A DNA stretch of 63,818 bases, filler included, from Guillardia theta CCMP2712 (GCF_000315625.1; 6 parts of 6 records of this genome joined end to end with filler, not necessarily neighbours in it); one strand, 5' to 3'. Positions 44,486 to 45,334 are shown, counted from the first letter of the whole stretch. Notes: generated from the sequence alone by a model not told the origin. Numbers and translations are program-made.

Positions 44486-45334
44486 GCAGCACTGGTTGAT
44501 CCATTTCGGAGTTGGCCCATCATTCAGCAAGAGATGCCAGACAAAAGCAAGATTGAATTTAGTCCCCATTGTCCCCTAGCGCATCATATGATATGATCCT
44601 TACGCGCTTATAGACAGATTCCATCCACCCAAGCCAGGAAAGAGTAGGAATTGCAAAGCAAATGTCAGCCAAATCGTCCCCTGAACCGCACATTTCGAGA
44701 AGATACTTACAAGCTATCCAGCCCAATCAGCAAGTTCACCAGACCAAAATCAATGCCAAATCACAAAAATATTGTCAGTCCAATCATCCCCTGAAAGCAT
44801 ACTTCATCATTGTTACTTACCGGCTATCCAGCCCAATCAACATCCCATCGGAGGATTAACCGTAAAAATTACGAAATTTGTCAGTCAATCATTCCTTGAG
44901 CGCATCATATGATATGACACTTACTCCCTATTCAGTCCATGCATGCAAGGCAAAACCAGGAATTTTCAAAATAAATATCAGTCCAATCATCCCCTGAACG
45001 AGCACATGCTGCACAGAATAATGCTTACCGCCTTCCGAATAATATCATGGCCATTCACGGCAGAGCGTGACAGATACGAAGTCAGATGATGCCAACTAGG
45101 AGCTATTCAAATTATGCATTTTGTGCTGTCGTTGGTACCAAGATCGACCATGATCTGGAGAAAAAGCAGTCAAAAGGAGGAAGTGAAGGAGCCGCCCAGA
45201 AAAGGAGTTGAATGATCGAAGGAACAGATGCGGGGGAGCAAAAGAAACATCTCCGTCATCAAGCATGTAACTGAAGGTATCAGCATCTCATCACAGCTGC
45301 TCCTTGCCTGGCATTTTTGGCAGTTGAACGGCAT
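44486..45334 (-). pseudogene. Microexon Zn-module gene, paralog B (probably truncated or pseudogenised)
   Basis: Exons 45334-45308 (MPFNCQKCQ, GC donor) and 45154-45116 (IMVDLGTNDSTKC, following donor reads AT). Then 3-nt exons GCG 45031-45029, GGA 44927-44925, CCG 44823-44821, CTT 44713-44711, CGC 44606-44604 and 6-nt TGCTGC 44491-44486. Confidence 0.7.

Follow-up and report, generated by a model that had tools for sequence, protein, structure and literature searches.

The locus described here raises the question of whether an exon can consist of a single codon, many times in succession, and still be joined correctly to its neighbors. Known 3-nt exons are rare and isolated, and how the splicing machinery recognizes them is an unsolved mechanistic problem. 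Annotation and read aligners usually overlook the 3-nt exons of animals (cytohesin-1, RPS24) and the 1-15 nt microexons of plants, and known microexons occur singly or, at most, as two to three neighbors (two in rice, three in RPS24) (PMC8831610, PMC13149111). The exons of the two genes from the cryptophyte alga Guillardia theta CCMP2712 analyzed here, denoted A and B, resemble the animal and plant microexons in being very short and in frame, with ordinary AG and GT sites at their borders and strong GTRAGT donors, and those of gene A are likewise missed by the public gene model; unlike the known cases, they form runs of 10 (gene A) or 6 (gene B) consecutive exons of 3-6 nt with mutually homologous introns, in a cryptophyte host. 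The full-text literature that was searched contained neither trains of 3-nt exons nor cryptophyte microexons, an absence that is not proof of novelty.

Our preferred reading, to which we assign a probability of about 0.7, is that one gene family of G. theta encodes a protein loop by a train of one-codon exons, with up to ten consecutive exons of 3-6 nt that each have their own intron of about 100 nt; that the train consists of tandem-duplicated intron-plus-codon modules and is spliced accurately; and that gene B is a freshly dead member of this family. In such a gene, each 3-nt exon would lie between a (CTGGAT)AG acceptor and a strong intronic donor, GTRAG(TAT), and the train would spell out, one codon per exon, the loop between a conserved Cys and the Cys-Cys pair of an N-terminal Cys-rich module. 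If true, the family would have a previously undescribed gene architecture and reveal a new route by which loop length evolves, and it would offer a natural test bed for how the spliceosome handles exons shorter than its own footprint.

Both genes lie within one scaffold piece of the window, that is, the whole stretch of DNA analyzed (63,818 nucleotides, filler between the joined records included); the coordinates are collected in the table. An earlier note on gene B, made from the sequence alone, proposed that exon 1 (with its GCAAGG donor) and exon 2 (ending in Cys) match those of gene A, and that the first microexon, GCG, and the Cys-Cys (CC) exon are common to the two genes. All these elements were found on the minus strand, GCG in both genes and the CC exon as TGCTGT in gene A and TGCTGC in gene B. 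In gene B, all microexons and the CC exon are in phase 0 with exons 1 and 2 and have an AG acceptor and a GT donor each, and predicted splicing gives the virtual product MPFNCQKCQ-IMVDLGTNDSTKC-A-G-P-L-R-CC. The pattern AG-NNN-GTAAG, which the note had expected to be commoner than in shuffled sequence, occurs 8 times in the whole window compared with 2.19 expected, and none of 100 shuffles reached 8; five of the eight matches are in gene B, on one strand, at a spacing of 104-110 nt. Tandem Repeats Finder detected no array across the gene B units because these have diverged, the BLASTN identity among some of them being 72-77%. An alternative donor within exon 2 of gene B (G/GTACCA) was rejected, given that its use would shift the frame and lose Cys residues.

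The similarity between the exon 1-2 regions of the two genes, on which the earlier note relied, holds for the protein: BLASTP aligned the N-termini with 8 identities in 23 positions, including all three Cys (E = 6e-05 in a single comparison). It does not hold for the DNA, where similarity outside the splice-unit motifs was not significant. A and B are therefore old paralogs that kept architecture over sequence.

Table. Features of the locus, in positions of the window; a slash marks an exon border
Feature	Position	Strand	Details
Scaffold piece	41345-56573		identical to JH993110.1 (GCA_000315625.1) from base 2862, 0 mismatches in 12,298 bases compared; nuclear genome of G. theta CCMP2712
Gene A, microexon part	48080-49278	-	exon 1 27 nt, exon 2 39 nt, GCG, AGAGGA, GAA, GGA, GCA, TAT, TGG, TGG, TGCTGT, AAT
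Gene A, exon 1	from 49278 downward	-	27 nt, MGWNCMDCK, donor GCAAGG
Gene A, exon 2	49083-49045	-	39 nt, after CTCCAG/ATC
Gene A, 36-nt exon	48012-47977	-	1750-nt contig
Gene A, 779-nt exon	47918-47140	-	1750-nt contig
Gene A, last exon	within 46323-48012, ends 46323	-	AKAP7_NLS 2H phosphoesterase domain, PF10469; 1750-nt contig
Gene A joint	49083-49252	-	GC-AG intron 1
Gene A joint	48953-49044	-	exon 2 to GCG
Gene A joint	48654-48742	-	GAA to GGA
Gene A joint	48375-48552	-	GCA via TAT to TGG
Gene A joint	48167-48256	-	TGG to TGCTGT
Gene A joint	48012-48080	-	AAT to 36-nt exon
Gene A joint	47918-47977	-	36-nt to 779-nt exon
Gene A joint	47078-47139	-	779-nt to last exon
Gene B, exon 1	45308-45334	-	27 nt, MPFNCQKCQ; length, phase and donor as in gene A exon 1
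Gene B, exon 1 donor	45307-45302	-	GCAAGG (GC donor), from sequence
Gene B, intron 1	45155-45307	-	153 nt, GC..AG, ends CTCCAG; 94-nt AG-free zone before acceptor
Gene B, exon 2	45116-45154	-	39 nt, IMVDLGTNDSTKC, begins CTCCAG/ATC, ends TGC (Cys); length and phase as gene A exon 2
Gene B, exon 2 donor site	45110-45115	-	ATAATT (gene A: GTACTT), from sequence
Gene B, one-codon exon GCG (Ala)	45029-45031	-	AG/GCG/GTAAGC
Gene B, one-codon exon GGA (Gly)	44925-44927	-	AG/GGA/GTAAGT
Gene B, one-codon exon CCG (Pro)	44821-44823	-	CTGGATAG/CCG/GTAAGT
Gene B, one-codon exon CTT (Leu)	44711-44713	-	CTGGATAG/CTT/GTAAGT
Gene B, one-codon exon CGC (Arg)	44604-44606	-	AG/CGC/GTAAGG
Gene B, two-codon exon TGCTGC (Cys-Cys)	44486-44491	-	CAG/TGCTGC/GTAAGA; counterpart of gene A TGCTGT (48167-48162)
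Residual gene B sequence beyond CC exon	44296-44485	-	without significant similarity to gene A downstream exons
Inverted copy (96%) of 50811-51852	43258-44295	.	3' part of Ifi-6-16 gene; similarity search

Four public sequencing runs (X1, X6, X15 and X19) were compared with positions 43450-49400. X1 and X6 are assembled contig sets from different studies, with different organism labels, that behave like RNA; their RNA nature is a guess by the tool, and splicing efficiency cannot be read from contigs. X15 is a DNA-like contig set that may share strain and data with the reference assembly, and X19 is a raw-read RNA run, 3'-biased and about 6% read, that barely covers the 5' part of gene A and so says little on gene B.

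The splice model put forward in the earlier note is supported by the RNA-like X1 and X6 contigs, which join the exons of gene A at the predicted borders; the joints seen in one or both sets have GT..AG ends (CT..AC on the plus strand), apart from the GC-AG intron 1. Between these joints, the aligner left letters unplaced which, on the minus strand, read CGAGAGGA, equivalent to GCG-AGAGGA, or GAGC and GAGCA, corresponding to GGA-GCA. There is also a loose end, GAAGGAGCATATTGGTG, which reads GAA-GGA-GCA-TAT-TGG-TGG-TGCTGT once the bases that follow are added. Such strings can arise only through the joining of one-codon exons. In the DNA-like X15 set, this stretch is covered by an unspliced contig of 1412 nt, and the joints are absent. 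Gene A is transcribed, at a depth of 9-406 in X1 and 200-3900 in X6, and most of its one-codon exons are joined in RNA. The junctions AGAGGA/GAA and TGCTGT/AAT are absent among the joints listed for X1 and X6, and contigs end exactly at GAA and AAT, which fits a branch of the assembly graph between spliced and unspliced forms. Intron-retaining contigs are common over gene A, and partly spliced intermediates are abundant; no exon skipping was seen in the RNA-like contigs. Separately, in all runs, a CTCCTG repeat in the large exon of gene A (47246-47278) shows very high depth and many loose ends, which is cross-mapping at a low-complexity site and not a true peak.

Rather than belonging to a small Cys-rich peptide gene, the gene A array is the 5' end of a gene for a much larger protein. 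The 1750-nt contig links the AAT exon to the 36-nt exon, the 779-nt exon and the last exon, and the spliced frame encodes 557 residues, with a Cys-rich N-terminus, a low-complexity linker and a C-terminal AKAP7_NLS 2H phosphoesterase domain. The last exon matches the Pfam profile PF10469 with E = 1.1e-25 (91 bits vs a cut-off of 24.4), and its translation carries two H-x-T motifs, HVTL and HITI. In these two features, gene A resembles the 2H phosphoesterases of the AKAP7/ASCC1 type, whereas gene B is without the phosphoesterase part; unlike the AKAP7-family architectures found, gene A has the Cys-rich N-terminus, and a 55% identical homolog on a metagenome contig (L001) has no array upstream. 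The Cys pattern of the N-terminus is C-x2-C, C, CC-x-C, C-x2-C, and the one-codon exons encode the loop from Cys22 to the CC pair, plus one Asn beyond it, the 3-6 nt exons contributing 39 of the 1674 coding nucleotides and 13 of the 557 residues. The public model of this gene (541 aa) starts at window position 48050, lacks the 12 upstream exons, ten of them of 3-6 nt, and reads through a 58-nt intron in another frame; genes of this kind are missed by the G. theta reference annotation.

For the N-terminus of either gene, Pfam returned no family at E up to 10, and a PDB sequence search with the Cys-rich N-termini found no solved structure below E = 0.19. The RanBP2-type zinc finger (PF00641), suggested by a likeness to W-x-C-x2-C .. 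C-x2-C seen by eye only, was rejected in the absence of a profile match. By inspection, the N-termini MGWNCMDCK and MPFNCQKCQ have no hydrophobic signal. Protein searches with the 260-aa exon of gene A gave no match, and a search of the ESM Atlas confirmed the AKAP7 family and added nothing further. With the phosphoesterase exon, protein searches recovered metagenome fragments only (P0001, 86%; P0002, 55%; P0007, 82%). Their contigs (L001-L003, ENA metagenome PRJEB17505) carry relatives of this exon that are 55-86% identical, indicating that the sample contains a close relative of G. theta; upstream, these contigs are without a microexon array or too short, and L002 and L003 look frame-broken.

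The splice signals around the one-codon exons suggest how these might be recognized. Of the 16 microexon donors in genes A and B, 15 conform to GTRAG, and many read GTGAGTAT or GTAAGTAT, sequences that can pair with U1 out to position +8; the acceptors often read CTGGATAG. The introns preceding microexons are 79-112 nt long, and most have a CTRAY motif 40-70 nt from the acceptor with no AG between. In gene B specifically, AG-free zones of 62-82 nt precede all six unit acceptors, and a CTRAY branch motif is located 50-61 nt upstream in five of the six unit introns, with none in i7. On the minus strand of 41345-53080, there are 30 AG-free runs of 50 nt or more, of which 17 end at exon acceptors of genes A and B, 16 at microexons and one at exon 2 of gene B. 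By comparison, AG-free zones measure 21-40 nt in the three ordinary introns of gene A (i12-i14, 58-67 nt), and the candidate branch motifs present in two of these lie closer to the acceptor, at 15 and 25 nt. The sole AG that interrupts an AG-free zone (gene A intron 4, 48761/60) is an alternative acceptor in RNA: X1 and X6 contigs join AGAGGA to this site, 14 nt upstream of the GAA acceptor, which adds ACGGGGCTGGATAG (window 48759-48761) and would shift the frame of gene A. The use of this AG is as scanning from a distal branch point predicts.

From these features, and with the three ordinary introns as the comparison set, we infer a steric and U1-based mechanism. Each intron would be recognized as a unit (intron definition), the distal branch point would hold the U2 of one intron at a distance from the U1 that binds 3 nt past the acceptor, and extended pairing between the donor and U1 could offset the missing exon contacts; the introns would then leave stepwise, with one codon remaining at each step. 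The rules that the locus suggests for such exons are that the branch point is distal, the AG-free zone long and the pairing to U1 extended; mis-splicing occurs at the sole AG that breaks them. The ten-fold occurrence of an acceptor-donor spacing of 3 nt makes the long-standing question of the limit on U2/U2AF-U1 proximity testable. A hairpin between the GGATAG acceptor and the GTATCC donor tail was also considered and set aside, being possible in a minority of units only.

The units of both genes share their ends, GTRAGTATC .. GGGCTGGATAG, and those of gene B also share a middle block, TTCAGGGGATGATTGGACTGAC, that contains the branch motif. The best explanation for this shared sequence is that an intron-plus-codon module was duplicated in tandem and that the copies then diverged everywhere but at the signals; loop length would therefore vary among paralogs, and a duplicating module of this type suggests that loop residues could be added one at a time. 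The proposal that the microexon-coded loop is the variable part of the family agrees with the sequences at hand: ARGEGAYWW in gene A, AGPLR in gene B and a loop ending in GKY in a third, expressed paralog. The latter, which is not in the window, is represented by an X6 contig (loose ends at 44446 and 44480, depth about 1100) that reads ggatag/GGG/AAA/TAT/TGCTGC/gtaaga and whose intron after the CC exon matches that of gene B over 35 nt; this contig supports the variable-loop idea. A paralog contig from X15, roughly 90% identical, keeps the CGC unit with a synonymous change (CGC to CGT) and a better donor (GTAAGG to GTAAGT), and the X15 depth over gene B is 11-55 vs a baseline of 3-5, which together indicate that further B-like copies exist. 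An exact look-up of the 123-aa ORF over the 3' end of gene B returned only its own scaffold, so an identical second copy does not exist.

Within the 15-kb piece, the intron motif is confined to genes A and B, except for one CTGGATAG at 42194. This site, CTGGATAG/AGGA/GT on the minus strand, was rejected as another family member; it adjoins a 35-nt tandem repeat at 42206-42445 (6.8 copies, 97% alike). A metagenome scan for CTGGATAG-NNN-GTRAGTA yielded single, chance-like matches and no arrays, the apparent clusters being 4-nt simple repeats.

Gene B itself is probably a recently disabled, truncated 5' fragment copy of a family gene, and the damage that the earlier note suspected is visible in several respects. 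The exon 2 donor has AT where gene A has GT, probably a disabling G-to-A change, and two codons beyond the end of the exon the frame runs into a TGA stop. Similarity to gene A is lost after the CC exon, with neither the downstream Cys exons, the absence of which the note had pointed out, nor any other counterpart of the AAT, 36-nt or phosphoesterase exons (local score of 21 vs a null of 17.6 +/- 2.5), and the unique sequence of gene B stops at 44295, the edge of a segmental duplication, about 190 nt past the CC exon. RNA depth over the gene is 0-1 in X1 and 0 in X6, except for two bins whose listed contigs look paralogous, with loose ends and variant letters. No contig or read across a gene B junction was found in the four runs, one of them 3'-biased and few conditions being sampled; the apparent silence is what X1, X6 and the 3'-biased raw reads of X19 show. 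The unit signals of gene B are intact, so the loss would be recent if the gene is dead. One X1 contig of depth 6 (45017-45116) jumps from the final base of exon 2 of gene B to position 45017, with six extraneous letters (CATCAG, minus strand) at the joint; this is neither a standard splice nor the unit that was predicted.

Intact unit signals fit a functional gene as well as a young pseudogene, and gene B might be a working gene that is expressed only in conditions other than those sampled, spliced through AT..AG or a nearby site, and encodes a short Cys-rich product or has its remaining exons misplaced by the scaffold. We regard this as unlikely. It would account for the GTAAG donor and long AG-free zone retained in every unit intron, along with CTRAY in five, and is compatible with the existence of close B-like paralogs, at least one of which is transcribed (X6 loose end at 44480; depth 12 at 44357-44390), and with an X15 contig that leaves the window at 44288, a hint of a different continuation of B-like sequence. 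However, AT..AG is a non-standard splice pair and, moreover, is followed by the in-frame stop; X6 depth is 0 over exon 1 and intron 1, and X1 depth is hardly higher, whereas the neighboring gene A is abundant; and there is no significant match to the downstream exons of gene A.

A chimeric scaffold, in which the AT donor and the truncation are errors of draft assembly or sequencing and the true locus is an intact family member, appears improbable. Both the AT donor and the 44295 junction rest on one draft assembly, in an area full of segmental duplications; no listed contig spans 44295, the DNA-like X15 contig mentioned above departs at 44288, and all the X15 and X6 depth at 44357 and 44390 carries variant letters. 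Nevertheless, the depth of the variant contigs, 4-5 times the baseline, suggests that they stem from paralogs and not from the locus itself, and an X15 contig covering 44902-45360 has no differences from the window, including position 45115. On the choice between G and A at this position, which the earlier note proposed to check, this contig carries A and no other letter, although it does not amount to independent support because it may share strain and data with the assembly. Finally, it is very improbable that the gene B array is a decayed tandem repeat of about 105 nt, derived from one intron-exon-intron junction, whose units were never spliced singly: the units are homologous, so that the five AG/NNN/GTAAG matches are not independent events, but they are only 72-77% identical or less and form no Tandem Repeats Finder array, every unit has a donor, an acceptor and an AG-free zone and all but one have the branch motif, the spacers are all exactly 3 nt and in frame with exons 1 and 2 and the CC exon, and RNA shows splicing of the corresponding units in gene A. 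As a probable pseudogene, gene B is ordinary; its value is comparative, in revealing which intron features survive divergence.

Taken as a family of one-codon-exon genes, A and B share traits with several known systems. In Schistosoma, the bulk of the coding sequence of micro-exon genes (MEGs) consists of exons of 6-36 nt; the products are secreted proteins, and variation arises by exon skipping. Genes A and B are like these MEGs, reportedly described by DeMarco et al. in 2010, in having runs of symmetric tiny exons, in forming a gene family and in that the microexon-coded part varies among members. Unlike the MEGs, gene A has 3-nt exons that supply a minute fraction of an apparently intracellular, enzyme-like protein, with no skipping seen. 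At recursive (ratchet-point) splicing sites, no sequence is retained apart from, in some cases, a cryptic exon that is excised afterwards, and the steps span tens of kilobases. The acceptor followed almost at once by a donor, the stepwise removal and the abundance of partly spliced intermediates are reminiscent of this process, whereas genes A and B leave one codon in the mRNA per step, and the steps are about 100 nt. Introner-like elements are many near-identical intron copies dispersed in unrelated genes; the introns of one gene share sequence here as well, but the copies in A and B are in tandem and include a codon, and no terminal repeats or target duplications were seen.

The neighborhood of the two genes has several features of its own. 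Three paralogous Ifi-6-16 (PF06140) genes are located within 10 kb, at 42998-43642 (+), 49697-50302 (+) and 51468-52292 (-), linked by direct (90%) and inverted (96%) segmental duplications, and one Ifi-6-16 ORF of the piece is 70% identical to GUITHDRAFT_153099. For an alga, the proximity of this 'interferon-induced' family to a 2H phosphoesterase gene is curious. Rfam gave no match in 41345-53080. Two of the Ifi-6-16 genes are immediately preceded by tandem repeats with a period of 21/43/64 nt (AAGTACCCCCTACTTGACCTC; 42650-42915 and 49399-49622), which may be promoter repeats. At the far end of the piece, 53081-56140 is occupied by a 28-nt satellite (CTAAGGCAAGGACTAGCGCTAGTGCTCC) in 109 copies that are 96% alike.
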